A stretch of DNA of 64,000 bases from Basidiobolus meristosporus CBS 931.73 (Eukaryota > Fungi > Basidiobolomycota), in the NCBI GenBank assembly GCA_002104905.1, contig MCFE01000147.1, forward strand, positions 62,001-126,000. The letters run 5' to 3'. The position numbers and the translations under genes are program-made. The notes under the pieces are model-generated. The model searched no databases. It had not been told where the DNA came from and was given only the letters and a program-made list of their open reading frames with translations. Of this stretch, positions 16,936-63,085 are shown one piece after another (position 1 is the first letter of the stretch; every line of letters starts with the position of its first letter).

Positions 16936-17020
16936 CATGGGGCAAACAGTTTGACCTTCAACATTGTAATACTTTTATATCACTTTTTGGTCAATACTCA
17001 TGAGAGGTTAAGACAGTATT

Positions 17021-17754
17021 AGACTTGTTGCGTTGTATAGTGCCACATTGAGCCATGAGTGCCAAATGATGCCATAGTGTGCCAGATAGGCCAAGTGAGC
17101 CTTTACCTGGCCACAGAGTGTGAAACATAGATCTGCATCTTCATGCAAAGCAGCCCCTGTGTCTCACCAATGATGCAGGAGAAAATCCATTTTTTGACGT
17201 TTTTTTGAGGATTAATATTGTGGAGGATGTGTAAGAGCACTAAATGATTGAAGATATACATCTGGTACTCAATACCCATGGCACTCTGAATCTAGCACAT
17301 GTGGCTTGTAACATGTCACAAAAATGCATGGCACTATCTTGGTCCACTGGTACTATCCAACACTATATTTAAATATTAGCCCTATAGTAAGATCAATACA
17401 AAGCACTTATAGTACTGGATAGTACCAGTGGACCAAGATAGTGCCATGCATTTTTGTGATATGTTACAAGCGACAGGTGCTAGATTCAGAGTGCCATGGG
17501 TATTGAGTACCAGATGCATATCTTCAATCATTTAGTGCTCTTACACATCCTCCACAATATTAATCCTCAAAAAAACGTCAAAAAATGGATTTTCTCCATT
17601 ACAATGAGTGAAGTACAGGGGCTGCTTTGCATGAAGATGCAGAGCTGTGCTGCACACTCTGTGGCCAAGTGTAGGCTCACTTGGCCTCCCTGGCACACTA
17701 TGGCAGCTTTAGGCACTCATGGCTCAATGTGGCATTATCCAATGGAACAAGTCT
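17021..17754. mobile_element. Palindromic foldback element, copy 2 (734 bp, TSD ATT)
   Basis: Inverted arms, AGACTTG/CAAGTCT ends, ATT on both flanks; empty homologous site in the reversed CACTA-like copy at ~35565-35600. Confidence 0.9.
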
Positions 17755-17897
17755 ATTGTACTAGAGACATTTCATCAACATGAATGTAGGATTTAATGAT
17801 GACCTGCCATAGTAAGCATTTTAATTAAAGCTGTGGCACCATGTACACATGCATATGTAGCACTATTTCCCCTTTGGCTTGACTCACTTCTATATAT

Positions 17898-21330: not shown

Positions 21331-22960
21331 ATTTAGAAACGTACACAACAATACAAATACAATGATGTGATGAACTGGTTGTGTAATTATTCAAGTGTGC
21401 TTCTAAAGTAATGGCTGCCACAGGTACTGTTGAGATTCAGCCAAATTTCTCTGGTATTTGAAGGGCTTATTAAGGCTTAAATGCCCCATGTAAAACCTGG
21501 TCATCAGTATTGGGGTATTTCTGAAAAGCAAATGCATTGCTCCCAGTGAAAAGCATTTGCTCTAACAGATATCCCCATCTTAAGTATCTTCAGTTTCCAG
21601 TTAATTTCAGATAATGACCATTGGCTTATGGTTTGAGAACTTTGCTGCATTAGCATGCTGACATTGGGACAGTCTCACTGTTGGATAATGATGCTCTTGG
21701 TGCTGGTGTGTGTATAATAATAACACATGTGATTTATGGAGTAAATCCACTGGATTTCATACAATTGACAGCAATACCATCTATTGTGCCAAGAAAGGCA
21801 AGCTATCCTGCTGGTGGATGAAGTAGACTTGTTCTGTTGGATAGTGCCACATTGAGCCATGAGTGCCAAATGATGCCATAGTGTGCCAGAGAGGCCAAGT
21901 GAGCCTATACTTGGCCACAGAGTGTGAAACAAAGCTCATCATCTTCATGCAAAGCAGCTGCTGTGTTTCACTCATTGTGTTGGAGAAAATCCATTTTTTG
22001 ACCTTTTTTTTGGATCAATGTTGTGCATGATATGTAAGCCCACAGAAGAATTGAAGACATGCACCTGGTACTCAATACCCATGGCACTCTGAATTTTAGC
22101 TCCTGTATCTTGTACCATGTCACAAAAATGATTGGCACTATCTTGGTCCACTGGTACTATCTGGCACTATAAGTGCTTTATACAGGTTTTACTTTAGGGC
22201 TAATAATTAAATATAGTACCCAATAGTAACAGTGGACACTATATTAAATTATTAGCCCTAAAGTAAAACCTGTATAAAGCACTTATAGTGCCAGATAGTA
22301 CCAGTGGACCAAGATAGTGCCAATCATTTTTGTGACATGGTACAAGCTACAGGAGCTGGATTCAGAGTGCCATGGGTATTGAGTACCGGATGCATTTCTT
22401 CAGTCCTTCTGTCCTCTTACACATCCCGCACAACACTGATCCAAAAAAAAGGGTCAAAAAATGGATTTTCTCCAACACAATGGGTGAAACACAGGGGCTG
22501 CTTTGCATGAAGATGCAGAGCTATGTTTCACACTCTGTGGCCAAGTATAGGCTCACTTGGCCTCTCTGGCACACTATGGCATCATTTGGCACTCATGGCT
22601 CAATGTGGCACTATCCAACGGAACAAGTCTAGTATCTTCAATGTAGATATCCATATTTGCTTTGACATGGCAGCCATCTACTAGTATCCTTCTGGAAAGA
22701 TTACCATTCCCTCTGGCAAAAGATATAGGTATCTAGGTTGAATGGTGATTAAGGCCAAATTTCCAGTGATACTATCATCAGATTTCTGCTCTGAAAGCAT
22801 AAGATAGGTAGCAGATTCAAGTTGATGCAAATCAGTAGCTAGCAGGATTTGCTGTCAGAGTACCTGTTTGAGGAGAATTCATCAAGTGCCAAAATAAAGG
22901 CATGGTCATATGTAACTTCAAAGTTGCCTGTTCTTCTTGGTTGTTTGTAGGGTCAGCCAC
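21330..22960 (-). pseudogene. CACTA-like transposase fragment, interrupted by foldback copy 3
   Basis: Collinear by eye with ~15720-16510. Confidence 0.65.
21825..22630. mobile_element. Palindromic foldback element, copy 3 (806 bp, TSD AGT, inward-extended palindrome)
   Basis: 347-bp arms (21825-22171, 22284-22630), AGT on both flanks; empty homologue at ~16190; the centre contains the 40-bp loop in both orientations. Confidence 0.9.
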
Positions 22961-34585: not shown

Positions 34586-35643
34586 TGTTTGTTTGGAGCT
34601 TTTAGCCCTGCTTGTCATGGGCTCTTGAGGAAGCTGCTGGCTCTACCATAGCACCCTTATTCTTCTGCCTTTTATAGTTTCTGCTATTCTTAAGATACTT
34701 TCTTGGCAAATTAATGCTGGCCCAAAAGCTGTTTGCCCATTTGAGTCCAGGATAATGCTCATGGAACAAGTCAAGCTCATTCTGCTTGGCCTTGAGTTCA
34801 TGATGGTCCCATGGTATATTGGCCTTAAGGTGATGATGTGCTAGACTTCTTATGGTCTCCTGAATATTGGCCCACTCTTCATTACTTCACTCAATGGCTT
34901 CACAGATCTACAGTGCGTTTTGATTTTTTTGTATTGGTATAAATACCACATTGTCTCCCTCCCATGCTCTACCTGGGGTATATATTGCTCTACACATATT
35001 ATCTACTCATCTGGTTTCTGGACTATTTTCTGATTTCTCTGGGCCATTGCATCTATCCTATCTGCCACAGCACCTAATTGCTTCATTAATGCTTTGGTAT
35101 GAGCTGACAACATACTTACTAATATGGGTGGTGGTGATTTTACAATGACCACTAGCTGGTCTTCAACTGAAGGTATGCTCTTACTACATTCCCATTGGCT
35201 TGAGCATAATAGTCAGCTTGTGTCTCAACAGAGATCCTCTTTTGCCTACTTGACTGAGAGCCTGAGGAGTCTACAGTATTACCTTCAGTGGGCACACTGT
35301 CAACATGGCCTTTTTGGATGAAGCCCCACTTGTTGCACTGAATGTCAAAGTAAGCTGTTGTTGAACCATTCTTCTGCTGCTATCAGCAGTGGGGCTTGGT
35401 TAGGAATCAGACAATTTTGCTTTATTTCTTGGCAGCCTATATATGCAGGTGAGTCAAACCAAAGGGGAAATGGTGTTATATATACATGTGTATGTTGTGC
35501 CACCACTTTATTTATAATGCTTACTATAGCCAGCCATCATATAGTCTTACATTTATGTAGGTGCAATGTCTCAAATTCAAGACTGTCTTAAGTTCACATG
35601 AGTATTGACCAAAAAGTGATATAATTGCATTATGTTGTTGAAG

Positions 35644-38399: not shown

Positions 38400-39400
38400 G
38401 TTGTTGTCAAACCTTTGACAATGCTTAGTAAACATGTCTGACAGGCCACCTGGTAGTGATTGCAGCAACTTGCTCAGCATCACTTTTGTTTGTTACAACA
38501 CCTCCTTCATGCTCCTCTTGTATTTGGTCACTTCCTTGCCCTCTTCCTCTTCTGCATCCTATTCAACATCCTAGTCCCCTTCTTCATTCTCTTTGCTCTC
38601 TACCTTCACTCCTGGCATATACTCAGATACTGCCTGCTTCCATACTTCTTGTTTTATGAGGGATTACATTCATTTTCTCTACTTTTATACATATTCTGAC
38701 TAAGCTGATGGCCCATTCTTGTTATCTTTCCCTTTAAGGTTACTGAGCTTCTTGCTCCTATGCCACATCCATCTAGCCAGTAGTGAATCACTTCATCTAC
38801 ATATTATACCATATTTTTATTTTGTTAATATCAATACTCTGTTACTTTATTAAAGCTCAAAACTGCATTTGCAAAATTATTTGTCTTTAGTAACCATGGA
38901 TTTTTGTTCCATCACTTGGCTGTTCAATTGTTTCTCTACTTGATCAAGAAGTGATTGATTTTACTATCAGTTAACTTATCAGTCTAGGCCCAACTCTCCT
39001 TTGTATGCTATAATCTAAATATACCACTTGGAGTACTCTATAATGAGGCAACATCAATCTAAGCTGAAGTTTGTTTTGAAACTGCTCAATTGAAAGGGCT
39101 TGCATTCTTCTCAGCACAACTGAATCACCTGCTATTTTGTCGCAGTTCTCTTCAGATATTTAGAACTTCCAAGGGTACTACTACCAGAATTGGTAACTGT
39201 ACTGCTCTTCTTGCTGTTATCTTTCTCTATAGTAGACTCTTGGTCCTCCTTTGGGGCACAAGAGCTGCTATGGCAGTGGTAACTTCCTCTTTTAGTATTG
39301 GTCCCTCAGTAACAGGCCTGAAGCTTTGCCCACATGGGTGGCTTATTAACTGTGTTGGTGCTGTACCTGATGCAGTGTCTCTGAGTGCTGTGTAACTATT
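38400..39400 (-). pseudogene. Decayed ORF with possible Myb/SANT-like N-terminal part, acidic tract and coiled-coil-like end
   Basis: Stop-riddled translation contains SWA*TDKLTDSKINHFLIK*RNN..FANAVLSFNK and an E-rich tract; weak resemblance only. Confidence 0.25.
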
Positions 39401-39658
39401 TGTTCTCTCCTGTCCTGTAGACTTATTTTACTTTTATATACACCAACCTCATTATATTATACTTTAGCCTCTCTTGTGACTATACCATGGTTCCATTCTG
39501 TGATGGCTAGACAAACCAAGGCCACTACACATTGGGTGCTGTGGCTTATTGATCAAAGAGCAAGCTATTGATGCTGATATTGATTTTGAGGATAATATCT
39601 GGGTATACTTTGGAGTCAACTAGGGTAGACAGCTACTAAATTGCTCACATAGTACAAT

Positions 39659-40392
39659 AGACTTGTTCTGTTGGATAGTGCCACATTGAGCCATGAGTGC
39701 CAAATGATGCCATAGTGTGCCAGGGAGGCTAAGTGAGCCTATACTTGGCCACAGTGTATGAAACATAGATCTGCATCTTCATGCAAAGCAGCCCCTGTGT
39801 TTCACCCATTGTGTTGGAGAAAATCCATTTTTTGGCCTTTTTTTTTAGGTCAATGTTGTGCAGGATATGTAAGAGCACAAAAGGATTGAAAATATGCATT
39901 TGGTACTCAATACCCATGGCACTCTGAATCTAGCTCCTGTGGCTTGTAACAAGTCACAACAATGCATGGCACTATCTTAGTCCACTAATACTATCTGGCA
40001 CTATAAGTGCTTTGTATAGATCTTACTTTAGGGCTAATAATTAAATATAGTGCCAGATAGTATTAGTGGACTAAGATAGTGCCATGCATTGTTGTGACTT
40101 GTTACAAGCCACAGGAGCTAGATTCAAAGTGCCATGGGTATTGGGTACCTGATGCATGTCTTCAGTTCTTCTATGCTCTTACACATCCTGCATAACATTG
40201 ATCCACAAAAAAATGTCAAAAAATGGATTTTCTCCTGCATCACAGGTGAAACACAGGGGCTGCTTTGCATGAAGATGCAGATACATGTTTCACACTCTGT
40301 GGCCAAGTATAGGCTCACTTAGCCTCCCTGGCACACTATGGCATCATTTGGCACTCACGGCTCAATGTGGCACTATCCAACGGAACAAGTCT
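39659..40392. mobile_element. Palindromic foldback element, copy 4 (734 bp = 347 + 40 + 347, TSD AAT)
   Basis: Arms 39659-40005 and 40046-40392, loop 40006-40045, AAT on both flanks. Confidence 0.92.
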
Positions 40393-40624
40393 AATTATTT
40401 GCACATCAGAGCTTGCCAATAACAAAGCCAAGCTGTTCTATGAAATTCCATTCCCATGTGGCTGTTTATTGATAGTCCCTACAATACACAAGTGGGTCTG
40501 TAAAGTGAGCATTCACAGTACTTTCTGGGGGTGTGGTTGCCTTTGATGAGTAAAGGGCTTTCTGAGTCCAGGTCAAGCAATTGTGATAAAATCAAAGAAA
40601 CTTATTAGTGTGCTGCTGATGATT

Positions 40625-41015
40625 GATGACTCCCAATGGACACATGGTAATGTAGCAAGTGAGCATCCATAACACCTGTTGAGGTATGGTTACTGCACAC
40701 TGTAATATGCATTAAGGACTCTTGTAAAGCTAGCATGATGAGCAATAAACGCACTTTACTACCACTCAGCTAATGGTTGATGACTCCTGCTAGGCATAAG
40801 TAAAAGTAGCAAGAAGGTATCCTTAAAACCTGTTAGGGTATGGTCACTGTGCACCATAAAAGTGCATTAAGAATTCTGTAAAACTAGCATCCATACTATA
40901 ATAGCATTTTAGTATCACATGGCTGACTCCTGCTATTCACAAGCAAATGAAGCAGGTGGGTATCCATAAGTCCTGTTGGGGTATGGTTACTATGCACCAT
41001 AACAATGTGTAGGAG
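40625..41015. repeat. Imperfect tandem repeat, about 2.6 units of ~145-155 bp
   Basis: GATGACTCC...AGCA(A/G)G..G.ATCC.TAA..CCTGTT.(A/G)GGTATGGT.ACT..C(A)C recurs at 40625, 40779 and 40922. Confidence 0.7.
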
Positions 41016-43693: not shown

Positions 43694-46600
43694 TGTTGTA
43701 AGAGTCTTGGGGATATTGGAAGTGATTGGGAGGACAAGTAGATTATGTGGTTTTCACTTAATGATTTATTGAATGTAAAAGTAGTATTTATATTTTTGCC
43801 TGGTCTTGGCATTACAAACACATAGAATAGGTTAAGAAAGATCCCAAGAACATGTGTGCAAAGTTTGGGGCTGTTTGGACAACTTTGAGAATTTTCATGT
43901 TGTGGATACCTGGTATTTTGGTGAAAATATTCTAAGTAAATCCCAACAAGGAATTTGGTCAGGATTTGAGGGTAATGATCTAAGTGACTTTGTCAGGTGA
44001 TTATTTAGGTGGAAATACAAATTTTTACAACATTCCCACTCAGCTAAATGCTCATACTAACTAGTCCTAATTTTGACCTAAGATATTCAAACTTGTCTCT
44101 AGCTAATGGTTTGGTAAGCATGTCTGCAATCATTTCATCTGTAGGACAGTAAACTAAGGTAACTAAGTTATTCTCTATAGCTTCACGTATGAAATGATGT
44201 CTAATATCTATGTGCATGGTTCTAGCATGAAAAGTTGGATTTCTACCTAATTGTATACATCCTTGATTATCTTGAAATAAAGTAATAGGCATTTTTTGAC
44301 ATATGCCTAAATCTGTGAAAAGCTTTCTTAACCACATTGCTTCTTTTGTAGGTTCACAGGCTGTCATGTACTCTGCCTCTGTGGTAGAAAGTGCCACAGT
44401 TGGTTGCTTTCTTGAGTTCCATGAAATTGCTCCTTTACAGTAAAGAAGGGTGTTTCCTGTGGTGGATCTTCTGTCTTCCAAATTTTGTCCCCAATCAGCA
44501 TCAGAGTATCCCACAAGATCCTGTTCTGAATCCTTATAAGTGTATCTTAAGCAGATATCAGCAGTTTCTTTTAGGTATTTAAAAATCTGCTTAACTGCTG
44601 CAATATGATCAGATCCATAGTTCTGATTATGTTGGCTGACAACTGCCACTGAATATGAGATATCTGGACATGTTCCAAGCACAATATACACCAGGCTGCC
44701 TACCATAGACTGATAAGGAAAATCAGGGCTTTCAGATGGAACCAATTTGGTGCTTCTTTAGTATATCTTGAATATACTTGGATTGGCTTATGGTAATAGT
44801 CTGGGTACTGCTGTCTATGGAGAACTTAATCCCAAAGTAGTAACTAAGTTCTCCTAGATTGGACATCTTGAACTCCTTAGATAGGCTGAATTTAGTCTCT
44901 TCCAATGTTTCTAGGTTATTGGTGGCTATAATAAGATCATCCACATATAGAGCTAATAGAACTGGATTTGCTCTATCTGGCTTATAGTATATACTATAGT
45001 CAGCATTACTCCTTTTGAAACTCAAAGATTCCAAGTAAAAATCTATCTTGCATTTCCAGGCTCTTGGTAATTGTTTGAGACCATAAAGTGACTTTTTAAG
45101 CTTGCAGACCAAATGGGGTTTATCTTGGTCAACAAACCCATTAGGCCAGTCCATATACACATCCTGATCATCCCATCAGGCTGGTCCATATACACATCCT
45201 CATCAAGTTCACCATTCAAAAATGCAGCTTTTACATCCATTTGATGAATAAAAAACTTATATTTGGCTGCAATTACCAATATTGATCTGATAGAATTAAA
45301 CTTGGCTACCAGTGCAAAGGTCTCAGTAGAGTCAAGTTCTTTTGTTTGAGAGTACCCTTTGGCCACAAGTCTTGCTTTGTATCTTTCACTTGTACCATCA
45401 ACCTTGAATTTTGTCTTGAAGACCCACCTGCATCCAATTGATTTTTGGTTGATTGGTAATTTGACTAAGTCCCAAGTTTGATTTTCCAACAGGGTCTAAT
45501 ATTCCTCAGTGATTGCAGATCTCCAAAACTTTGTCTGAGGGCTATTTAGGGCCTCTTTTACAGTATGGGGCTCATCAATATGGACTGAATCAGCATAGGC
45601 TAAGTTTGTACCCTCATTGATATAGTAATTTAGGCTATTTCTTGTCTGATTTGATCTCCAGGCATTTGATACTGAAATGATCACTTCTGGAATATTCCTG
45701 GGCACTGATTCAGGCTGAACTGCGGTTGTAGAGTTCTCTGGAGTGAAAAAAAAACTTCATTGTTTTGCTCTGATTCAATCCTGACAATTGTAGGACTTTG
45801 GATCAAATTTTTGTCATCATCTGATGTCATTTTTTGTGAAAATTGTGAATTTTCATCAAACAACACATCCCTGGACTTGATTAGCTTCTTTGCTTTGGTA
45901 TTGTAGAGTCTTTATGCTTTACTCTCATTGCAGTAGCCCAAGAATATTCATTTTACACTTTTTTGCTCAAATTTTGACTGATTTCCAGGCTGTTTCTTGG
46001 CATATGCTGTACATCCAAATATTCTTAGATGTTCTGTGCTTGATTTATATCCATACCATGCTTCAAATGAAGTAGAATCACAAAGTATTCTGTTAAAACT
46101 CCTATTTTTAAGGTATACAGCTGTGGCAACTGATTCCACCCACAAATCATAGGATAATTTTTGAGCATGGATCATAGGTCTTGCCATATCAATTATTGAT
46201 CTGTTTGCACATTCTGCTACTCCATTTTGCTGTGGGGAGTATGGTACAGTAGTCTCTTGCTGTATCCCATGAATGTTGCAGAAGTGGATGAAGAGTTTTG
46301 AGGTATATTCTCCACCATTGTCAGAGTGTATTTTCTTGATTTTTTCACCAGTTTCTCTCTCCACCATGGCTTTAAACTCCCTGAGCTTAGACAGAGCTTC
46401 TTCCTTTCTCTCCATGAAGTAGACCCATGTGTATCTTGTATAATCATCAATAAAAGTGATTAAATACTTCATCCCGCCTAAGGATAAATTTTGCATAGGT
46501 CCACACAGATCTGAGTGAATTAGATCTAATTTTTTCTTAGTTTTGATTAATCCAGAGCTCTTGAACAGTTGTCTGGCTTGTTTCCCATATATGCAGGCTT

Positions 46601-48215
46601 CACAGTGCTCCAAATTAGCTGGGGGATCAATTTTTACTCCGGAAATTAGCTGATCTTTGATCATTTTACGCAAATAATCAAGATTGATATGTCCAAATCT
46701 CCTGCGCCAAAGCATTGGTGTTTCTTCAATTAATTTACTTATATTGGCTACCAGATATGATGGAATATAAGTCAACTTGTATAGATTCTGATCTCTGATG
46801 CCCAAAGCAATATGGGCACCATTTTGATCAGTGATCCTGCATCCAGAATTGTCAAAACTGAAACTGAGTCCTTCTGCTGTGGCCTTACTTACAGAGAGTA
46901 GGTTCTTGGCTATTTTTGGTACATAGAGTACTTCTTTAAAGGTCAGTATATGGCTTCCTTCACTGCTTCTAAGGTTTGCTTGGATAGTTCCTTCTCCCAC
47001 TGCATCAAGCATTCTATTGTCTAACATGAAAACCTTCTTAATTGGAGTTTCTTGATATTGGGTAAAAAGTTTTTTTGGTGTGTAAAGTGTTGGGAAGCTC
47101 CAGAGTCAATATACCACGTCTGAGAATCCTTGTTTGTGGTCATATTTAGTGCAGATATGAATAGTCTATCTTCAGTTTTGCAGCATTTCCATACTCAGGC
47201 TTCTTTTGCTGGTTATCTTTCTTTTTGAGACACCAGTCTGATGTGTGTCCTTTCCTTTTGCAGTAGTTGCAAAATAGGCTGCTGTTGCCTTTGTAGGGTC
47301 TTGGGTACCTCCTTTGTTGGTTATCATTGCTTATTAAAGCATTTTCTTCTTCCTTCTTATTGGCACTTGATTTTCTTAATTCTTCATCCAGGAGCCTTCC
47401 ATATACATAATTTAAGGTCAAACCTTCAGTTCTGGACTCTAGAGCTGATACAAGGCCCTGAAACTTGTCTGTCAGGCTATTCAGGATGGTAACTATCACA
47501 TCCTCATCAGTAGTCGGTACGCCCACAGATTCCATCTCATCTACCAGCAGGGTAATTCTGTTAATTAGATTTTTCATTTCTTCTCCTGGCAGCATCTTTG
47601 TAGTAAAGAATTTTTGTCTCAGATACATTTTCTTGGCAGCTGAGCATGACTGGTAGGTGTCTTCTAATGCCTTCCAGGCATTCTTTGCTGTTTTTGCTCT
47701 TGAGCATTGAATTAGCAATTTGTCCTTGACATTAAGGCAGTGCAGTTAAAGGCACTTTGTTCTTTCTTCTGGTACTTCAAGGCTTCCTCTCCCATGTTTT
47801 TAGGAGGGCATTCTTCTCCCATGACAATATCCCAAAGGCCTCTTTCTTGTAGTAGCATCTTCATCTTCACCTTCCACACTTGGTAGTTAGATTCATCCAA
47901 CTTTTCAGCAGAGGGAAAAATTCCAGTAATAGCAGTAGTAGACATTGCAGAGAGTGACAGCTTGGGGCTCATAACCTGTTGTAAGAGTCTTGGAGATATT
48001 GGAAGGGATTGGGAGCACAAGTAGATTATGTGGTTTTCACTTAATGATTTATTGAATGTAAAAGTAGTATTTATACTTTTGCCTGGTCTTGGCATAACAA
48101 ACACACAGAATAGGTTAAGGAAGGTCCCATGAACATGTGTGCAAAGTTTGGGGCTGTTTGGACAACTTTGAGAATTTTCATGTTCTGGGTACCTGGTATT
48201 TTGGTGAAAATATTC
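43694..48215 (-). mobile_element. Near-complete Ty1/copia family-1 retrotransposon (3' LTR 43694-44032, PPT ~44033-44040, PBS 47965-47976, 5' LTR 47977-48215 truncated)
   Basis: Two highly similar LTRs, PBS GGTTATGAGCCC, PPT AGTGGGAA, and all copia domains in gag-PR-IN-RT-RH order. Confidence 0.95.
44044..47945 (-). pseudogene. Copia gag-pol polyprotein with a few frameshifts and stops
   Basis: KLDESNYQVWKVKMKMLL gag, CNYCKRKGHTSDWC knuckle, DLIHSDLCGPM integrase, LYVDDLII RT, GYSDADW/HARTMHIDIRHH RNase H. Confidence 0.92.
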
Positions 48216-48216
48216 C

Positions 48217-48737
48217 AGAGAGCACTCTTCTCCCATGACTACTTCCTAAAGGCCTCTTTCTTATGGCTTTATTGTTGACCTCAACCTAGGGACTTGATAG
48301 TTTGATCCATGCAGCTTTTTGGCAGAGGCAGACTTGCAGTAAAAGAAGCTGAGAGTATTCTTGAGAGTGACTGCTAGAAGCTCATATCCAGATGCAGTGG
48401 TGTTGGAGATATTGTAAGTGAATGGGAGAAGTAATATATTTGTTGGTTCTCATGTAATGATTTATTGAATGTAAAAGTAGTGATGAAGCTTTTGCATGGT
48501 CTTAGCACAACAAACAAGCAAGATGTTCCCAGGAAGGTCTCATGAGCATGTTTGGCAAGTTTGGGGTTGTCCGGACAACATTGAGAAATCACATGTTCTG
48601 GGAACCTAATATTTTGATGAAACTATTTCAAGTAAATCCCAACAAGAAATTTGGTCAGAATTCTCCATGATTTGGAGACTGTGATCCAAGTGGCCAAGTC
48701 AGGTGAAGGTATAGGTGTAATCACACAAGTTATAACA
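48217..48737 (-). mobile_element. Older copia family-1 LTR plus gag start abutting the young element
   Basis: 48217-48390 resembles 47800-47970; 48400-48737 resembles the LTR and ends TTATAACA. Confidence 0.65.
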
Positions 48738-49089
48738 TAGCAAACTTGGGGCTTGAAATCTGTTGCAAGATCCATGGGAGTACCGGAAGTTATCTGGAGA
48801 GCCAGAAAAATTGCATGCTGTTCACTTGCAGTTTTATTGAGTTCAAATAGAATATTGATACTTGTAGTGGAGCTATGTAAGACCAATGAGAGGAATGCAT
48901 TGAGGAAGGTCTCGGCATGCTGTTGGCAAAGCTCGGGGGCTTCTTGACAAGTTTGGGAGATTTGATCATTTTCAGGCCGTCACTGATTCTAGGAATTCGC
49001 TGATATCAGACAGAATACATCTTGGATTAGTAGCACGTGATGTAGCAATAAGCTAAGCAGAACCTTATGCTATACGAGTGGTTTAGGTG

Positions 49090-49320
49090 TAAACCAAATA
49101 TCAACAACCACACCTTGCTTTACTCCAAAAGAGCAACCTAATGGACTTCCAGGAAGTTAACAACCATAGCTCTTTCAAGGTGGCTCAGAAAGCTATATTC
49201 CAACATAATCAAGGAAGTATACAATTAGAGAGAGAGATCGAACTTTTCATGCTAGAACTAAGCACATAGATGTTAGACATCGTTTCATCCAGGAAGCTGT
49301 AGATCGTAATTAGGCCTAGT
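49090..49320 (+). pseudogene. Copia RNase H relic at the edge of the TE domain
   Basis: Translates to FHARTKHIDVRHRFIQEAVDRN. Confidence 0.7.
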
Positions 49321-50560
49321 TAATATGAACATTTAGAGAAACAGCCAGTGGAGCTCGGTTCGACCAACCCCACAACCAACTGAAGCTCCTCCAATTCATG
49401 GATGCTTTATCGATGGACCGTTTCACGTGATGAGGTACGCCCGACACATAAACTACCCTGAGGTGGATGCACCGCGATGCAGGTGTAGTTCCCTCAGTTG
49501 GCCGTACCAACTGGAAGCCTTGGCTGGACCGAAACCCATCGTGTGACGGGGTTTGGACGACTCCGCTGGGGGCTGGGCGGGCATTAACCTTGCTCGACGA
49601 TCCGGAGAAGTTATCACGGGGTTCGGAGCACTTGCACCACCTCAAGACATCATTGCCCTACTGGGTTTCGGATCCACCCAGTGGTGAGCGAGGCCGAGAC
49701 TCCACGTCCCATCGGTATGGAACCAATGCGGTAGATCGATAATATGGCATTGGTTGGGTGATGGACTTGACCTGTCCAAGGATCACCACATTAGAGCTTA
49801 GAAGATGGGAGGGATAAGTGGATACAAATGGGAGGACAAAGGTTTCGATGGTAGGCGGGCCAATCTATCCCAACATATCACCAGCATCTTGATCCAACAA
49901 CAAACACCTCTCGACCCTGGCCATGGTGACCTCGATGATGATCAACATCAAATCTGGCTCACCTAACGAGCCATGGCGAAGGAATCTGCTTAGGTTCGCA
50001 ACCGACCCTCCAATAGAACCCAGTCCAACCAATGAGCCTCCTCCCAAACCAACCAACTTCGTCGCACCATTCCGGGTGGGCCAATCAGCCGGGGGCAGCG
50101 GAAGAGGGACCTGGATGATCATCTGGGACCAATGGGACGGCCAGATCGGACTGCTCGTTTCGAGATGGATTCTCACTGATGGCGATTATCAGTGGCCAGG
50201 TGGATGTCCATGTTGATTGATAATCTTGGCACTGCTCATTGGAGGAGCCCATTTGTGGGGAGGTGGGAGGGCCTTTAAGCACACGAGGATCTGGCGAGAA
50301 TTCAGTTTCGGTCTCTCCTCCTTTCGCCTGTTGGGATTCATGGGTTCAAGCTTGACACTGACGTTGAGACACTGATCGACTTTCCCCTGCACCCTAGCAA
50401 CCCACTCACGTACGTATCCCTCCACACACATACACGCACACCCACACCCACACCCACACGCGCGCGCGCGCACGTCCAGCGGATTTTCTTTCGTTCACCT
50501 AGACGATTCCCAGCGACTCGCCCAAAGTGGCGTCCAATACGTTATTGTCCTCTTTCGTAG

Positions 50561-51592
50561 AGGCGATGTCGAACTCCAGAGCTGGACCGCCCCCCACCAC
50601 ACCGGACACCAGCTCGCTTCACCAGCATTCCCACACCCACGCCACGCCCACGCCCAACCCCACCCGCACCCGCACCACCACCCTCTGAACGAGATCGCCA
50701 CCACGTCCAGCCCCGGAGGCAGCAATTCCCAACGAAACAAGCGGCAGAAGTTCTCCACGGACGAGACGTATTTTCTGCTGACTGCGCTGAAGGATGTGCT
50801 CAGTCTGTACCCTACCACCACCCGGAACAAGGAGCAAGTTGGTTGGAAGGTGATCCACGAGATGTTCACCCAGAAATTCCCCGACAAACCGGCCACCGTG
50901 GACCAGCTATACTACAAGTAAGTGACCATTCTACCCCCTCTCCCCCAAAGGTCGACACTCCGGCGGGAACCCGCCGGAGACCCGGACGCGCGGGCTGATC
51001 CCCGGCCAGTCGCCACCCCATCCCGCGAGCCCACCTTTGCGTAGGATTGATTGTCAACGAGCAGTGGGCTAATCGAGCGTTTAGATTCAAGAACCTGCGA
51101 TCCGCGGTCAACGCATACCGACGATCCAGGCCGGCCCACATACAATACGACCTACCGATCGAGAAGCCGAAGTACTGCGACCTGGTGCTGTCGATCATCG
51201 AGAACGAGACCCCGGAAAGATCCAGCACGGAGGACTCCCTGGACCCCGCGATGGTGGACAAACTGGTGGACCAGCGGATACGGTTTCGGGAGGAGGCGGA
51301 GAAGCAGCTGGCGGAGCTGCAGGCGGCCAAACGTAAGGTCTCCGACGACGGGGCCCACCTCGACTCCCCCGCCGCCAAACAGCTCAAGAAGGACTGGCAG
51401 GGAAGGCTGATGGACCTGCTCGAGGAAAGCCACCATCTGCAACACGAGAGCCTCGCCCTCCAGAAACAGTACCTGAAGGTGACCCAGGAGAGTCTGCGGC
51501 TTCAGCAGGAATGCGTGGCCGAGCTGAAGAAGGAGAACTCCCGCGGGAATGAGTTGCTCGAGAGGTTGATCGATGCTTTTCTCAAGAAGTGA
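50561..51592 (+). CDS. Myb/SANT (trihelix)-like DNA-binding protein with His-Pro tract and C-terminal coiled coil; 5' exon(s) unresolved
   Basis: Exon 50561-50917 (KFSTDETYFLLTALKD..WKVIHEMF..TVDQLYYK), intron 50918-51084 (GTAAGT..CTAAT..TTAG), exon 51085-51592 (FKNLRSAVNAY..coiled coil); acceptor at 50560, probable donor at 50410. Confidence 0.7.
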
Positions 51593-52220
51593 TCTTCGCC
51601 TCTTCATCGCATACACGCCGGTCCCTCCCCTCTCTTCCCCGCATTCTGGCTGCCGATATTTACCCACCGCGCCCCCCCCTCCTTCCGACCTTATCACCTA
51701 GGCTCATACCCATCTCCCACTCCACTCCCTCACCGTTCACACCACCTCCCACTGCCTTATTTAATCGATGAGTTTCTTCTGCCCATTTAAATGTCAGGTG
51801 TACATAGACTAATGCTTACTAGAGATGTAGTGTAGTGACGGATCCCTTACCACCACCTCCCCTCCCGCCCCAACCGAATAAACCCGTTCCCCAATGTCCA
51901 GTTCGGCAAGGATTCGATCAACGTTCTGGCAAATGATTCTATTCACTTCGGTTTGTTACATATGGTGTGTTGAGGGGGTGGCGTGTCCACGGGGGGAAAC
52001 GATGGAGAGGAGTGAAAGGGGGCAAGGCAAGGATATATGTATAGAATATTCGTAAGGAAAGTATATACCATGGTGAATGCTGATCGGCAAAAAAGAATAA
52101 TGAAACAAAAATGGTGGTTCTCTCCTTTCCGCTAGGAAATTACATAGATGGTGGGAGTAGGAGTGGGTGGTGGGTGGTGGGGGGTTGCAAGCGGCTGACG
52201 GCGACCCATGGGCCTGGGGC

Positions 52221-53408
52221 TTAGAGGGAGATTGCGGTGGGTCTCGCGTCGCCATGTCGGCTGGTATCTGCGGTGATGGTGCCACGGTTGGGTGAGCAGC
52301 ACAACAAGGCTAGAGCTTCCAGAGCTATTTTCTTGTCGTTGGGCATCTGCTCCTCCACGTTTCCAATGTCCTCCAGGGCCTTCTTCATCGGCGTGTGAGA
52401 CTCGAGGGAGGAGTTGGCGGGCTTACGTTTCGGCGTCAGGTCCATCTGAGCCCAGTTTTCGTCGTCCGTATCTTCGTCGTCATCCGGTGGCGCGGCTTTC
52501 GGCGTGGTATTGGGTAGGATGTCCACTGGCCTGTTCCACGTCCGTGGTGTGGAGGGGGTCACCGGCGTGGGTGGAAGGGAGAAGTTGGAAGAGTCCGTCC
52601 CTGCATTCACCCGTTTCGACGGGGTCAGCGGGACTAGTTGTTCTAACGGGAACCGAGGGATTTTCTTCTTCAGAGAGAGTCTGTTCGGACCAAGTGATTT
52701 CCAATCCTCATCCTCAGTATCCGAGTCGTGGCGGTCGTTCATGAACACGTCAGTGATCCCAGATTGTGAGCGGATGGGGCTGAATCCAGATGATGCCACA
52801 GATGGAAGGATCTTGATTGTATGCTCCCTTAGCTTGCGTGGTGTTCGTCGAGCGTTCTGGGGGGACGGTGTAGGGGAGGAAGGAAGTAGAGGGGCAAGCT
52901 TTGGTGGACCAAAAGGATCCCCAGCAGGCAAAATCTGACGATTGCTTGGCATCAAAGGTCTTGCGTTTGGTGTTGTCTCTCTGATGGGAGAGAAAGGATA
53001 GGCGGTAGGCATCTTGAATGTGTGCTGGTCCAGGTCCATTCCGGGCTGACTTGGTTTAGGTATTCCGCCCTGCGGAGAGGTATCTTCCGAGGTCTCCTCC
53101 AAAGTCCAACTATCGTTGTCGCCCAGGGACTTGAAGCAGTCACTGTTTCTCAAAGCTTCGCTAATGTTTTGAAGAACACTCTCCGGGTTTTCGGTTCTAA
53201 AATAGGGAAAACTCTCGATGACTCTGCCATAGATCTCTCGTACGTGAAAGGTCAAGGTAGCTTTGGGGCGAAGGGTGACGGCCTTCCGGATGATCTGTTC
53301 CCAAGACTCTTTGGGTTTTTTTAGCTTGAACTTGGGTGGGGTTCCCAGCTCTTTTTGGAAGAGGTTAGAGGGGAAGTCGGGATTTCTTACTGGAGTGCTT
53401 GAAGACAT
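52221..53408 (-). CDS. Forkhead/winged-helix-like protein with long Ser/Pro/Thr-rich C-terminus
   Basis: KPKESWEQIIRKAV..LTFHVREIYGRVIESFPYFR..CFKSL..W matches the forkhead pattern; 407-codon ORF, ATG at 53408. Confidence 0.7.
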   Translation of the reverse strand: MSSSTPVRNPDFPSNLFQKELGTPPKFKLKKPKESWEQIIRKAVTLRPKATLTFHVREIYGRVIESFPYFRTENPESVLQNISEALRNSDCFKSLGDNDSWTLEETSEDTSPQGGIPKPSQPGMDLDQHTFKMPTAYPFSPIRETTPNARPLMPSNRQILPAGDPFGPPKLAPLLPSSPTPSPQNARRTPRKLREHTIKILPSVASSGFSPIRSQSGITDVFMNDRHDSDTEDEDWKSLGPNRLSLKKKIPRFPLEQLVPLTPSKRVNAGTDSSNFSLPPTPVTPSTPRTWNRPVDILPNTTPKAAPPDDDEDTDDENWAQMDLTPKRKPANSSLESHTPMKKALEDIGNVEEQMPNDKKIALEALALLCCSPNRGTITADTSRHGDARPTAISL

Positions 53409-54057
53409 GGCCACTGACAAGTAAGGAAGTTTGAGTTGACACAAAGATCCCGAAGAGGTGACAAATTCAAGGAATATGAGAGGTCAAGAGGGATGGATTG
53501 ACTTGTTCGATGGACAAAAGTAAGTTCAAAATGGAAATGGAAATAGGAAGCAACAATAGAGAAGTATTTTCAATCGGTTAGGGGAAATAATTGACGGGGG
53601 TTCAAGTCATCTATTGAGTACTCGCTGGTAAACAAAGCACGCTGTCCAATCAGATCGACTGCGCTGGTAAAAAAAACCAAATAGAATTATAGATGAGAGT
53701 CAGTATTGGGGAGAGATCCTATTATAATAGTCACTTGGTGTTTACACTTGATCATTCGCCCATACGGTGACTTTCCTCATGGTCGCACGTGACGCGGGAT
53801 GTTTTTAATTGGACTGTGTCTGATGTTCATTCTCGTCAACCACCCCTGCCATCTGGAAATACTCCACTAACATAAGCATAGGTTGTGTAATAAATATTGC
53901 CTATGGAATGTTTGTACATCAAGCATACATTCCACACATCTTCACATTGTATTGTAGTTAGACACACATTATGCACTGCATTGGGTGGAAATTCGAGTTT
54001 CAGAGGCAGTGGCGTTGTCGCCCAAAATATGCGAATTGGGGGGGGGGTTAGAAGTTA

Positions 54058-54127
54058 CTTAAATTTAGCCGGATTTGTCCTAGTTGAACTAGCTTAAATT
54101 TAGCTGGATTTGTCTAAGTTAAACTAG
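54058..54127. repeat. 35-bp direct tandem duplication upstream of Sec61-beta
   Basis: CTTAAATTTAGC(C/T)GGATTTGTC..AGTT(G/A)AACTAG twice. Confidence 0.75.
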
Positions 54128-54269
54128 CTGGGGCCTCCCAATCAGGATGGGCCACATCCAAGTGTTGGTCAGTTCGAGTTCATAAAATATACCCCGAGTA
54201 GCATAACGCTATTGTGGTTAAATATTCCTCGAGAGCATTAACGCACACTTGCTAAATATCACAACCAAC

Positions 54270-54688
54270 ATGGTCGGTAGCAAGTTTCTGCTTCCTTTTA
54301 TTCCATCATACTAATCATGGTTTCCCTCACTATGTCCGCCACACCCACAGTCCGGTTCATCCTCTCCTGGTCGTAACCTCAGGTACAGATATGGTTGTCT
54401 CTATTCGTTTGTATGTCTACTAAATATAAGCAAACCGAACAGAAGTCGCGCTGGTGCCTCCAAGGCCGGTGGCTCACGTGGTGGAGCAGGCGCCGCCAAC
54501 ATGACCCGTTTATATAGCAGCGAAGCACCTGGGCTAAGAGTGTAAGTTGCACCCTCCTTCGGTGGTATGTCAGCCATGCCTAACCTCCATCTTTGTTTAG
54601 CGACCCAGTTGTCGTTCTCGTACTTTCGCTCGTATTCATTGCTTCCGTGTTTGCTCTTCACATTTACGGCAAGCTTACCCGTGGTTAA
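54270..54688 (+). CDS. SBH1: Sec61 translocon beta subunit (4 exons: 54270-54272, 54351-54382, 54443-54541, 54601-54688)
   Basis: Spliced product [73 protein letters not shown]; all introns GT-AG. Confidence 0.92.
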
Positions 54689-55012
54689 GCAATACACCCC
54701 CTTTCCTACTTCACACCCAAGCGACGCTCCCGTCCCGAATATTCTGTTCATGACCTCAGGCGTGTATTCACCCCCTTGACGCCACATGCACTTCAAATCC
54801 CTTTAAATGAAATACTGTTTATAAAGCATGCTTGTAGCAGATGCAGAAGTGGTTATAGATTGCAGGGAGAAGTGTGTGAGCCAACGTACACAAATGGAGA
54901 GGGAGGTTAGCCAAAGCCATGCAGTATTGTTAATACATAGATAGCTATTCAAAAGCGAAAGGGGGTATAAATCCAGAGGAAGAGATAGTTATGGTACAGA
55001 CGCAACAGGCGG

Positions 55013-56442
55013 CTACAACAATACCACCACTAAAGACAGGAACAACAACGCGATGGCGTCGAATTGCCAAGGAGTAAGCCCTGGGCCAGAGTTGTCAGAC
55101 TCGGCAAATAGTTTCAAAGGTTGAAGGAGACGAGTGAGGTTGTGGTTAGTGTGGTAAGTACCAAGGAGCTCCTTGGAGGTCTTCAGGTAATCCGGGTTTT
55201 GGTACACGAGGAATGCGGATTGCAATATCCGAGCGTACAGTACGGTGGAGTTAAATCCGTCAAGATTCGCGTACGGCCAAGACTGGGGATTGCGTGCGTA
55301 CGGAAGGAGGTAATCCACCGCTTTTCGGATACTTCTTCCATCGGGGGTTTGGAAATGGTAGAGATCCACTCCCACGCGGGCCGACAGTGCTGAGAGTAGG
55401 AAGAGCCCGTTTAGGTTGAAGATGGAATAGAACCAGGACGCTGCTCTGGCGGTTTCATGTGGTTGTGAGCCGTCCAATGCGATTTGGGCCGCGATACGCG
55501 CACTCGAGGCGTTCTGAGCTACTTTCAACGCCAGGTCGGTGCGTTTTAAAAACAGAGCGATCCCCATGTATTGGACATCGAAGTAGGTTCCTATTGGATC
55601 AGAGTTAGCGCTAGTCTAGTGGATTAACAGCTCAGAGGGCACCAACCGTGGTTGTTGATGGAGTTTCTCTCATCTATACTGTGCTGACTCGTATCAAGCC
55701 ACTCGAGGTATTTGGTGAACCAGTCCTGCAATCCCTCGGTGTCACTCTGAAGCCAGTATCTCGACCTCTGGAGGAATGGGAGCACGTCAAACAGGTCGTT
55801 CACGACGCTGAAATCGATGAGACCTTGCCTACGCCCTTCACTTGCCCCTTTGATAAACGAGGCAAAGTGGAGATGAGGATTCATTCGAGTTGAGTCGTCC
55901 AGAAACCATGTTCGTATGCGAGAGATTGCTTTGAGTGCATAGGTTTCGTTCTCGAAGAAGTAATATCCAAGGCCCAGGATCTGTACCTCACGAACCTAAG
56001 GAATGTCTAAGTCTTGGGAGAGAGGGGTGATAGATCCGCGAATACTGACCAGTGAGCGGAATACTTTGTAGTCAGGAACAGTAGTAATCTCAGGGTTGAC
56101 ATGGCCATCGCGACGAATGTAGGGTAGCCCATTTGCGGTGCTATTGTTTGGCCAGAAGTATCTTGCCAAAGAGAGGTAGTCATGAGGGTTACTGCTAGGA
56201 GCCAGCTGTGCTTTGCTTGTTACGGTGTAGGGGGTGGCATTACGGGTGGCTTTTTCCGAAAGTCTCTTGAGGGTGTAGAAGGAATCCTGTAGGCCTCTGT
56301 CATAATTTAACATATGCTGTTTATTCTCAGCAAGGATCTGCGCATTGAGGGTCATGAAATCAAAAGTGTCGACACTGGCGGCTGTTCCGAGAGACAGCAG
56401 GGAGTAAATCACGTATACTCCATAGTAGATGATGGATCGCAT
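55013..56442 (-). CDS. Alginate lyase family protein (PF05426-like), secreted, hydrophobic C-terminus; 3 exons
   Basis: HDYLSLARYFWP..GLPYIRRDG..NPE, WF...TRMNPHL, NNHG-TYFD, QPHE..R..SWFYS.FNL motifs; signal-peptide-like N-terminus; two GT-AG introns. Confidence 0.85.
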
Positions 56443-57202
56443 GGCTAAAGCTAGGTTTCGCCTAATCCCGCTCACGTTCGGTGGTTTATATGGGATTGAG
56501 AGCTGCGTAAGGTCGAGCTTGCCAAACAAAGCGACCCATAGTCAGGAAACAGAATGCTCGCAAGATCAGTAGTAAACAAGACGCAAACTCTAGTCAACTA
56601 TGCCAACTATCCTAACAACCACTATTATGCAATGCACTCCTTATGATGAGTATGGAGAGCAGTAACAAACCAACTACTGCACTTCCAAATAGAATTCAAG
56701 GGATCGGTGGTTTGACAGCTACCTTGCTCACCTACGCAGCCTTCTCTAATAGGCGGTGTTATCCAAGCTACGGATTGTCAACTTCACAGCCTTATCCTTG
56801 CCAACTACACAGCCTTATCCAAGCTACAGATAGTCAGCCACATAGCCTTATCCAAGCTACTGCTACATAGAGATCAACCCTAGTGGAGAATATTGCCAGG
56901 TTGCTGACCGGAGATTTAATATGGCTTCAGTCATATGATTCGTGTCGATTGGGTTACCCAACAATCATTAAGCTTCATTCTGTGCGATACAAATAATCCA
57001 TTGCCTGACCTTTGGAGTACACAAAGAGACGCTGCACCTCCAAATAGACCACACATCCGGTTTCGATTCGATGCCAGGATGTCAGGGAAATTGGTGGCCA
57101 CGTGGGGATGCATGCTCCCTCCGCCACGGTGGACTTCATAAAATCACTCCCGCTGCCCCCACGGAGACCTCACCACACTGATCATCCGACCCACTACACA
57201 TC

Positions 57203-58203
<1,001 letters not shown>

Positions 58204-58763
58204 CCGCCTCTACGGCTCAGATTCCCAATGGTGAAGGGATGTTGATAATGTAATTTTACTTCTAAATATCTACGTATGAATCATATCTATATCCAAACCC
58301 TATCCCCCTTGGCGGAGTTATTTTGTATAAAGTTGGATTAAAGCCCCGATTGGTGATTTACTCGTCGCAACATCTGACTGCTTTTAGTACAAATGATAAA
58401 ATTTTCACAAACGGGGGAAACCAGTCAGGTCACCTGATTTATTGGTCGAGAGGTAGTGGCGGCGGCGAGGTGCGGGTGAGAAGGGTAAGAAAACGGGAAA
58501 AATGGGGAAAATGGGGAAAATGACCGGCAACGGGAAAACCAGGAAAACTCATTCAATAGACAAATGGACACTCGAGTCAGTGGGGGGGGGGAATGGTTCA
58601 CAACCAGGGTGAATCATCATATGTACATGGACATCACCGTACAAAATCGTTCGTCACCGCAACTACCTATCACACATGTGGAGAAGCGTTTCTGGGGAGC
58701 AGGGCAATGGATACGGTATATAGCTCGCTACGGGTCAAGAAAAAGAGGTGGGCCAGCGGGGGT

Positions 58764-60507
58764 TTAGGGGATCCGGGAAACTATAAACATTCTTAGACAA
58801 TCATTAAATATATGGGACCAGTCCGCTTTGTAAGTGTTGTAATAAACGCTGCTTGCGCCCCCGTGGGATAATGTTGCAAGCATGGTGAATTCGAAGTGAG
58901 CTAACATGTTGCCGACGACGGTTAGCTGGGGGTTACGGGCTAATTTAGAATACACCAACTTACATCTCTGCTCACTTTCACCGTCTTCGTGTTGTCGGCT
59001 GCGTTTCGTCTGATTTCCTTGCTCTTCACCGTACATACGATCGTTCACTACACCAAGAGCAACCCAGACTATCGCTGCACTTGGTACACAGCACTTTGGT
59101 GATACGGGTGGCTGCGTACTCACCACAATGTGAGCAGCTTCCAGCAGTAAATGAATCAAAGGAGGGCGATCCAGTAAACGGAGAAGAAACATTCGAGTAT
59201 GAAGTCAAGGAGGAACTATTGGTAGAGGGTGTGTTTGGTGTGTTTGAGGAGGTTTGGATGGAGGCGTTCCAATGCTTCGTAATTTTCATAGCACTCACGG
59301 AGCCACTTTTGGATTTACTGGGTTTGGGATTCTTCGGGGTGGAAATCGGTGACCTGCTCTAAATGACAAAAGAGATGCAATGAGGGTTTGATGAGACTCA
59401 TGCGGGCAAAAAAACAGGCGATTGGTGGTTACTTTTTTTCGTGGGGTGGGTTTTTCTTTCTTGTCTCGATGGTGGTCTGTTGGAACAGGCTCCCTAGTAG
59501 GTTTCGGCACAGGTTTCTCCAAGGTTACCTCGCTTGGTAGAAAACTTAACGAGCTTTCAAAGGCTTCCTCCTTGATTTCAAAACTCTTCGTAGAAATGGT
59601 GCCCGTAAGATTACTCTGTAGAGTCAAGAGCTGCTCAGGGGTGGTCCCAAGTTCAGTCAAGGGCAGAACAGAGGCATTTGTATATCGTTCCTCATCACGC
59701 ACCCATGTGAAGGTAGGGGGAACGATGCCAGTCTCCCAGTAGAGCGTAGCCAACATAACCGCCTTGTCTTTCAGAAAGGCGTCGGCATTAGCGCCTCGAA
59801 GGTAATCCGTATAGGGAGGTAGTACTGGGGAAAAAGAAACAGCTTCGGTTTCGGGCACGATCGAGCTAGAAGAAAGGTGGATTAGCGGGGAGGTCACGTG
59901 GCAGGACAGGAAACCAACCAAAGGAAAAGGAGACAACATACAAAGACCCATCTTCAAAATAACAAACGAGATGTTCCCCTTTCTTGGGCTCCTGTATATC
60001 ATTCTCCATGGTTTGTTTGAACGCTTCGATTTCACGTTCGGGTACAATCTACGATCAGGATCGCAAAATGAGCGGGAATTTAGTTAGACGCCAGGCGAAG
60101 TACCTGAACAAGCACATGAAAGCGTACCATCGCAGGCCACCAATAAGGAGCAGTTGGCTCGTCAGGATCTACAAACACAACCTTACGCTTTGGGAAAGCG
60201 CGCTTTCGACTGTGAACCAAGCCAGCATCGAACTCGTAGCCAGAATTCTTCTTGGGGCCGTTGTGGGTGGAGCTGAAACTGGATTTTCTTGAGCGAGACA
60301 CGGACGTCATGTTTTCATTGACTACTTTCTCAGTGAAAATAAGAGGGAAAGTGGTCTCTCTAGACAGGGAGGTTATTTTGAAGCGACAAAAAAGACTGGA
60401 TTCTATTTTTACCAGCGGTACTGGCTTATCCCTATCACGATGTCTGGATTCCCTCCAAATGTATTGGATCCGTGGCTCAATTTGGGCGAATTTTCGAAAT
60501 TTCTCAT
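58764..60507 (-). CDS. PWWP/Tudor-like domain protein with Cys-rich C-terminal segment (multi-exon, boundaries approximate)
   Basis: KVVFVDPDEPTAPYWWPAM followed by an intron, then helical F..D.AV..A..Y..TG.VP..F.W; CxxxA..CxxC..CxxC near 59050-59110. Confidence 0.5.
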
Positions 60508-60629
60508 GTTAGTTGACGCTGCGTGACTTGGTATCTGGTGGGGTTGGAATGGAGAAAAGAATTCCGCTGAATACCATTGGTGCAAGGTCAAGTGAGTTTT
60601 AGATCTTTATGTATATATGTGTACTATGG

Positions 60630-60657
60630 CTAGGGCTAGGTTAGGCTAGGGTTAGGG
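60630..60657. repeat. Short degenerate telomere-like (TTAGGG/CTAGGG) tract
   Basis: CTAGGG CTAGG TTAGG CTAGGG TTAGGG. Confidence 0.6.
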
Positions 60658-60735
60658 CTGAGCGTGCCTTGTTAAAGAACATACTGTTGAATGCAACACG
60701 CGCATTATCAAATACATGGACAACATCTCTAATTT

Positions 60736-62685: not shown

Positions 62686-63085
62686 CTTGCTGTTTACCTG
62701 GTACAAAGGTACATGATAATGATCGTAAAAATCATTCTAAAATGATCGAGGTTGAACATCAAGATGAAAACCCTCGATCACGTGACTGCCGTGACCGATA
62801 ACCTTATACGGATGCGGAGTTGACCATCGCTTGCAGAGTCCATGTGTGGTTTCGAAGAGACATTTAGAAGTCCTATCACATCTGCCCTAGTGGTTCCAGA
62901 GTTTTATTAGAGTAAAATTAGGGGCTTAGTGAGGAGGGGATGATAAAGTGGGTTCGCCACGGATTTTACCAAGCTGTAGCCCCCTGTTGCCTAAGGTGGA
63001 AATATTGAGTAGACACCCAGCAGCTCCCATAACCCTTTCTTCCTTCCCTTTGTTTCCCAGAGGAGCTCAACTAACCTTTCACCAG

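Follow-up and report, generated by a model that had tools for sequence, protein, structure and literature searches.

The fungus Basidiobolus meristosporus carries a mobile DNA element of 730–806 bp that is almost wholly one long inverted repeat. Four full copies (c1 to c4) and one relic lie in the window, by which is meant the whole 64-kb stretch of DNA that was analyzed. The family is real, and it is a foldback variant of an already known type of transposon, probably Pangu-like. It probably consists of non-autonomous foldback transposons that are moved in trans by a Pangu-type DDE transposase and whose palindrome is maintained from the centre. Each element would be a cut-and-paste unit made of two inverted arms of ~350–400 nt and a centre of 10–40 nt, mobilized by an enzyme of the PHIS superfamily and, within it, of the Pangu group, to which the target and the ends of the element point. 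In a comparison that covered the searchable literature, with Repbase and Dfam outside it, no description of the family was found.

Structure, insertion sites and abundance

A BLASTN search of the window with one arm gave eight full-length arm matches and no others at E < 1e-3, which make up four complete elements, and an nhmmer profile built from all eight arms recovered the relic (Table 1). This is the tally of four full copies and one relic that the initial annotation, made from the sequence alone, had proposed. The ends that it described, AGACTTG...CAAGTCT, are likewise confirmed: AGACTTG is present at 8/8 ends, and the 25-nt terminus occurs eight times in the window against zero expected occurrences. 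In c4, the arms (347–348 nt, 40 nt apart) are 91.6% alike (~92% complementary). All 29 mismatches between them fall at arm positions 11–266, and the inner 81 bp are perfectly paired. Arm complementarity is 80% (79.6%) in c1, 91% in c2, 93% in c3 and 92% in c4, so that the earlier description of the copies as near-perfect palindromes was overstated. The plan of ~347-bp arms around a 40-bp loop, which had been ascribed to every copy, holds for all of them except c3. That copy is a palindrome with 398-nt arms and a 10-nt spacer (22223–22232), from which the 40-nt loop is absent, and its inner arms (22098–22222 and 22233–22357) are 97% complementary. The centre of c2 lies in the opposite orientation to that of c4.

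Each arm holds six copies of the motif GTGCCA, already noticed as a repeated feature of the arms; three or four are in direct orientation at arm positions 20–60, and three are inverted at 259–343. Its density is 8–16 per kb in the arms versus 0.5 per kb in the remainder of the window. The sole repetitive portion picked out by Tandem Repeats Finder is the subterminal array of ~45 bp, in which the spacing corresponds to about one or two helical turns. The 10-mer GATAGTGCCA at 39674–39683 pairs perfectly with 39967–39976, in the inner part of the same arm.

Table 1. Copies and parts of the foldback element and their paralogous empty sites, in window coordinates.
Feature	Position	Strand	Length	Details
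Copy 4 (c4)	39659–40392		734 bp	Left arm 39659–40005, centre 40006–40045, right arm 40046–40392
c4 target duplication, AAT	39656–39658 (left)			Partner 40393–40395
Copy 3 (c3)	21825–22630		806 bp	Fuller palindrome; AGT duplications 21822–21824 and 22631–22633
Copy 2 (c2)	17021–17754		734 bp	ATT duplications 17018–17020 and 17755–17757
Copy 1 (c1)	11068–11797		730 bp	Most decayed; AAT duplications 11065–11067 and 11798–11800
Relic	14612–14685	-		~75 bp of one family terminus, internally truncated; nhmmer E = 1.4e-6 and alignment
Subterminal GTGCCA-repeat array	39677–39722	+		Period ~10 or 19 bp; mirror ~40329–40374; candidate transposase-binding sites
Inner inverted GTGCCA cluster, left arm	39917–40001	-		Starts 39917, 39967 and 39996; right-arm mirror 40050, 40079 and 40129
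Empty paralogous site for c1	4506–4986	-		
Second empty site for c1	5975–6760	+		More diverged
Empty paralogous site for c2	35181–35643	-		
Empty paralogous site for c3	15808–16540	+		

How did the palindromes reach their present sites? The 3-bp direct repeats AAT, ATT, AGT and AAT that flank copies 1–4, respectively, are borne out at all four copies. With the local base frequencies (A = 0.305, T = 0.304), the chance of four A-N-T triplets is ~7e-5, and when the boundary is moved by a single base the consistent duplication is lost. For each of c1, c2 and c3, the filled site minus the element is exactly three bases longer than a paralogous uninterrupted sequence in the window, and thus the empty sites that had been offered as verification of these three insertions do verify them.

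The wider genome was reached through assembled contigs from two DNA runs of the same sample, aligned to positions 39259–40795 at 80% likeness. The contig pieces stacked on this interval number 9,718 and 9,013 in the two runs, and the summed word depth on the element is 2.4e5–1.1e6 versus ~140 for single-copy-looking contigs, a ratio that does not equal the true copy number. Such figures imply a family on the order of 10^3 copies or more, and the density in the window (four copies in 48 kb of repeat-rich DNA) is in line with this. A run of a second organism bearing the same species label gave 28 pieces only. Loose contig ends mostly start at 39658 (T followed by the element) or at 39656 (AAT followed by the element), and the sequence that precedes the 39658 group has a consensus ending in AT, so that the triplet reads ATT. 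In the contigs genome-wide, T before and A after the element are favoured. About 18 contigs match only the terminal 35 bp (39659–39693) and then continue into different sequence with TAGTGCC and TGGCA motifs; these are other family members with the same terminus, possibly including the coding partner.

The contigs also supply an empty site for c4. In each DNA run, one contig joins 39656 to 40395 via a single G, leaving a single AGT triplet, and its flanks differ from the window at 8/508 positions (98.4% alike). This empty version represents an allele of the c4 locus, or else a paralogue of very recent origin. Filled and empty versions occur at similar depth in the read-derived contigs, reflecting either heterozygosity or a very recent duplication of the repeat-rich region, and a third, more diverged empty version of the locus has its joint between 39636 and 40394. 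Since the c4 arms differ at 8.4% of their positions and an empty site exists nonetheless, either the palindrome was already imperfect at insertion or the other copy of the locus lost the element by precise excision. For the PIF-type element mPing, excision sites are reported to be repaired precisely (PMC4561436), and repair of this kind could also account for the c4 empty site. Several of the c4 minority bases are common to only a small share of the summed depth, ~25 to 140 single-copy equivalents, and this favours inheritance from a source element.

Proposed affiliation with the Pangu group, and coding capacity

To which group of transposons does the family belong? PHIS (PIF/Harbinger-ISL2EU-Spy) is divided into groups according to which bases make up the target duplication, following Han et al. 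(2015, Mob DNA 6:12; PMC4482050), the source of the Pangu and PHIS definitions used here. The Pangu group is defined by 5'-ANT-3' duplications (often AWT), for which paralogous empty sites serve as confirmation. Inverted repeats in the group are 11–40 bp long and usually start with AG or GG; two open reading frames are usual, the second generally without a known domain; and some members are non-coding miniatures, among them the 199-bp Pangu_PStr (PMC4482050). Elsewhere in PHIS the duplications are TWA (PIF/Harbinger), AT (ISL2EU), none (Spy), CWG (NuwaI) and TNA flanked by C/G (NuwaII), and outside Pangu that paper gives ANT specificity for bacterial IS5 relatives alone (PMC4482050).

The present family has A-N-T duplications and ends that start with AG. 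Its duplications are not the strict TWA (TAA or TTA) of PIF/Harbinger, nor those of ISL2EU, Spy, NuwaI or NuwaII. Thus, its target and end features fit Pangu and no other described group, and an assignment to Pangu, made from these features, is the best available. The statement in the initial annotation that ANT duplications and AG-starting repeats characterize Pangu agrees with the published definition, and its view of a non-autonomous foldback derivative that is nearly all terminal repeat fits an element that is non-coding and ~95% arm. Its expectation of a Myb protein in the autonomous partner fared less well, since among the 34 families of Table S3, which have 4–1,485 copies each, a Myb domain is found in two (PMC4482050).

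With the Pangu families of PMC4482050 the elements share the ANT duplication with paralogous empty sites, the AG ends, a fungal host and the existence of non-coding miniatures. They differ in arm length, which at 347–398 nt is about 10 times the 11–40 bp that is the described range, although not a defining criterion, for Pangu. The functional end may still be short, since only the outer ~25–95 bp are strongly conserved. Abundance also appears higher than in the listed families, and zoopagomycete hosts and foldback forms, both found here, are absent from the listing, in which the only fungal hosts are Melampsora, Puccinia, Talaromyces, Tremella and Tuber. In Repbase, many Pangu families go under the label Harbinger or Harbinger2 (PMC4482050). 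More broadly, the size of 730–806 bp, the lack of coding sequence, the terminal inverted repeats with target duplications and the high abundance are those of miniature, non-autonomous inverted-repeat elements. The Pangu-type transposase would presumably recognize the conserved outer ~25–95 bp, that is, AGACTTG and, after it, GTGCCA repeats at intervals of about one helical turn, and would cut at ANT with a 3-nt stagger.

The family is without coding capacity. The longest open reading frame in an arm has 86 codons and ends exactly at the terminus, and no candidate that shares words with its product was found among 5.8 billion proteins. Two matches from an exhaustive HMMER search were rejected as homologues, being translated satellites without DNA similarity to the arms. 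In the right arm of c3 (22372–22632), an ATG-started frame of 86 codons reads outward, and its TAG stop combines the final base of the element with the first two bases of the AGT duplication; the frame is probably meaningless. No Rfam family matches the element.

In the window itself, a six-frame scan gave no DDE_Tnp_4/IS5 hallmark motifs, and there is no longer element with the family ends: terminus patterns give only the eight known ends, and a motif for a divergent relative, derived from the loose contig ends, is absent. Exact look-up of eight window open reading frames found none of them on record. In metagenome contigs, the terminus pattern gave eight matches, all of which were discarded as chance 24–29-mers without an inverted partner, and in viral contigs it gave none. 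The Basidiobolus loci reached via Forkhead relatives (MCFE01000149.1:18174-39283 and B. ranarum JASJQH010000080.1) hold no copy of the family.

Could the family instead derive from another superfamily with 3-bp duplications, such as CMC/EnSpm, Zator or Academ, or from an undescribed one? CMC elements make duplications of 2–4 bp (PMC4482050), and Basidiobolus genomes have undergone huge expansions of CMC-EnSpm as well as of PIF-Harbinger (Muszewska et al. 2017; PMC5751038); moreover, the link to Pangu is drawn from target and end features rather than from a transposase. However, with 4/4 duplications of the form ANT, with T before and A after the element genome-wide in the contigs, and with ANT given in the PHIS comparison only for Pangu and the IS5 relatives, such an origin appears unlikely. 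Its ends would also be of another kind, since CMC/EnSpm (CACTA) ends begin with CACTA or CAC, and those of the family begin with AGACTTG.

An origin from bacteria is similarly improbable. Here the mobilizing enzyme would be a horizontally acquired, bacterial-type IS5/ISL2 transposase, and the foldback elements would be miniatures of a domesticated insertion sequence. Bacterial IS5 insertion sequences do share the ANT target triplet (PMC4482050), and the window holds a gene with a Pfam Alginate_lyase domain that is putatively bacterial. IS5 elements are prokaryotic, single-gene and short-ended. The presence of Pangu in five other fungal genera makes a vertical or eukaryote-to-eukaryote origin of a Pangu-type enzyme the simpler explanation.

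Foldback architecture is known from other elements. In the FB elements of Drosophila, long inverted arms make up most of the element and the centre varies between copies, but the arms consist of tandem subrepeats and are highly variable in length; here, tandem repetition is limited to the ~45-bp array, and arm length is fixed. Tc4, the fold-back element of Caenorhabditis elegans, is short and non-coding, with two long inverted arms (~770 bp), a small loop and a 3-bp duplication at a specific triplet (TNA within CTNAG); it belongs to the Tc1/mariner-pogo lineage, has tens of copies and is mobilized by a longer coding variant. The present family differs from it in target (ANT versus TNA) and in number (roughly thousands of copies versus tens). 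Tc4 was reportedly described by Yuan et al. in 1991 (in PNAS, 88:3334). Tourist-type miniatures of PIF/Harbinger, such as mPing, resemble the family in being non-coding and dependent on a PHIS-type transposase, in duplicating 3 bp, in their high copy number and in their potential to make hairpin RNA. They differ in their TWA duplication and their usually short inverted repeats.

Arm evolution and predicted hairpins

Why have the arms remained alike? Their evolution was judged from a tree with a topology test and from region-by-region identities in the four copies. When the eight arms are placed in a maximum-likelihood tree, left and right arm pair as sisters within c2, c4 and c3 (bootstrap 94, 83 and 82, respectively), and a topology that sorts the arms by the side of the centre on which they lie is rejected (delta lnL = 21.4, AU p = 0.031). 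The degree of homogenization depends on position. The outer 95 bp are the most conserved part of the arm across copies, with 96–99% identity among the c3 and c4 arms. Over the inner ~80 bp, the two arms within a copy are 100% (c4), 96% (c3) and 93.5% (c2) identical versus 85–87% between copies. The middle ~175 bp are not homogenized, the left arm of c4 being less like its own right arm (84.6%) than like the right arm of c3 (90.3%).

Sites at which the arms are asymmetric tell something of inheritance. Between copies in opposite orientation (c1 or c2 against c4) there are 0 cis and 9 trans sites, and in the same-orientation pair c1–c2 there are 3 of each, a weak signal; there is thus a weak indication that some of the arm asymmetry is inherited. 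A "flip-flop" of the loop as a special process separating c1 and c2 from c4 was considered and rejected, since the orientation of the whole element suffices (0 cis, 9 trans): an element with symmetric arms can insert in either direction. A Poisson test of mirrored private changes was dropped because it is confounded by subfamily structure, cross-copy controls sharing equally many sites. Repeat-induced point mutation (RIP) or CpG decay was also rejected as the source of arm divergence, the arm consensus having one CpG and the transition/transversion ratio being 1.33.

The centre of c3 is of a special kind. This copy has its centre twice, once in each orientation; the two share their private substitutions, and a 26-nt direct repeat (22/26 identical) of the inner right arm lies between the two centre copies. 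It arose either as an inverted duplication of its own centre or as a product of the homogenizing process. Many other centre variants, with strand-switch joints and internal skips, occur in the contigs. Together with the identity of the inner arms, the c3 centre and these variants suggest repair that is templated by a folded-back strand and starts at the centre.

As far as four copies can tell, then, the palindrome would be maintained from the centre outwards by hairpin-templated repair or gene conversion. Such homogenization would keep the inner ~80 bp identical within a copy and could extend the palindrome inwards, as in c3, leaving the middle ~175 bp to drift freely. The outer ends, on the other hand, would stay alike because both must bind the transposase.

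Folding predictions agree with the anatomy. Copy 4 as RNA is predicted to form one nearly continuous hairpin (-600.9 kcal/mol, z = -73), and c3 as single-stranded DNA does likewise (-438 kcal/mol, z = -48). The earlier proposal that a read-through transcript would form a dsRNA hairpin of ~350 bp is therefore borne out as a fold prediction. Read-through transcripts that fold in this way would be likely substrates for RNA interference. Entomophthorales relatives of Basidiobolus retain RdRP, Dicer and Argonaute (PMC11105155), and hairpin-forming miniature elements give rise to small RNAs in plants (PMC4561436, PMC3086885, PMC10004981).

A bolder scenario, which we regard as speculative and rather doubtful, combines both processes: the palindrome would be actively kept symmetric by hairpin-templated repair, and thousands of hairpin loci would serve as a genome-wide source of dsRNA that silences the family's own Pangu-type transposase. 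Hairpin-templated repair would account for inner arms that are 100% identical, for the inward growth of c3 and for the many variant centres. If the scenario were true, an early-diverging fungus unusually tolerant of long palindromes would harbour a transposon system that limits itself.

The very stable predicted hairpin, and the stronger conservation of the outer and inner parts of the arm than of the middle, might also be taken to mean that the host selects the elements as hairpin-RNA genes, or that they are structural palindromes with a cellular role, their mobility in either case being only historical. This is very improbable: 4/4 copies lie inside decayed Copia relics in an unannotated, CpG-depleted region, c1 has decayed to 80% arm identity, Rfam has no match, and conserved ends are what transposase binding would lead one to expect. 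Palindromes can also come from assembly or replication errors, but a reading of the copies as local inverted duplications or artefacts is refuted by four dispersed copies that share their ends but not their flanks and have both 3-bp duplications and matching empty sites, as well as by thousands of pieces in independent contig sets from two runs.

Genomic setting and significance

The hosts of the foldback insertions are decayed Copia-type retrotransposons. Decayed Copia copies with gag, integrase and RVT_2 fragments lie at 4024–4626, 11999–12391 and 44044–48236, and such copies supply the paralogous empty sites. When a Copia open reading frame was used as bait for paralogous contigs rich in transposable elements, the one match was a 3.3-kb environmental contig. 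A Copia gag-pol fragment 83% identical to that of the window is present in contig k141_126514 of the environmental metagenome ENA ERZ27274739, and it follows that DNA of a Basidiobolus-like fungus is present in that sample.

The window falls into two parts. No annotated genes lie to the left of ~50.8 kb, the regions of transposable elements in GCA_002104905.1 being without annotated genes. The observed/expected ratio of CpG is 0.05–0.09 in positions 1–48000 (37–40% G+C) and 0.76–0.77 in 48001–64000 (48–50% G+C). GpC is not depleted in the window, and the arm consensus has its single CpG against 17.7 expected. These values are a sign that repeats are mutated intensely and specifically at CpG, whether through methylation-driven deamination or through something like it.

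In the gene-bearing part, a block of PWWP, alginate lyase and Forkhead genes is present twice in B. meristosporus (window 50800–63400 and MCFE01000149.1:18174-39283), and a block of Tudor_Coilin, Arf, alginate lyase, Sec61-beta and Forkhead genes is syntenic with B. ranarum JASJQH010000080.1. The Forkhead open reading frame of the window matches, at 100% identity, a protein encoded on contig MCFE01000147.1 of the B. meristosporus CBS 931.73 assembly GCA_002104905.1, in which 62,000 is subtracted from a contig position to obtain the window position. Two further counterparts of this protein are an ortholog (76%) in B. ranarum and a paralogue (47%) in the duplicated B. meristosporus segment. The fungal gene with the Pfam Alginate_lyase domain may be of bacterial origin.

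What does the family add to the biology of these genomes? It gives a name and a structure to a very abundant repeat, where the PIF/Harbinger expansion was previously only a count. As judged from target and ends, it would extend the Pangu group to Zoopagomycota and to a foldback architecture, with repeats 10 times longer than any listed for Pangu. Thousands of dispersed, dated palindromes with 350-nt arms would amount to a natural experiment on how palindromes are tolerated and reshaped in eukaryotes, and the dependence of arm identity on position offers a concrete, testable signature. From their predicted folds, the elements are candidate sources of hairpin-derived small RNAs. The interest of the family thus lies mainly in palindrome biology and in the possible production of hairpin RNA.
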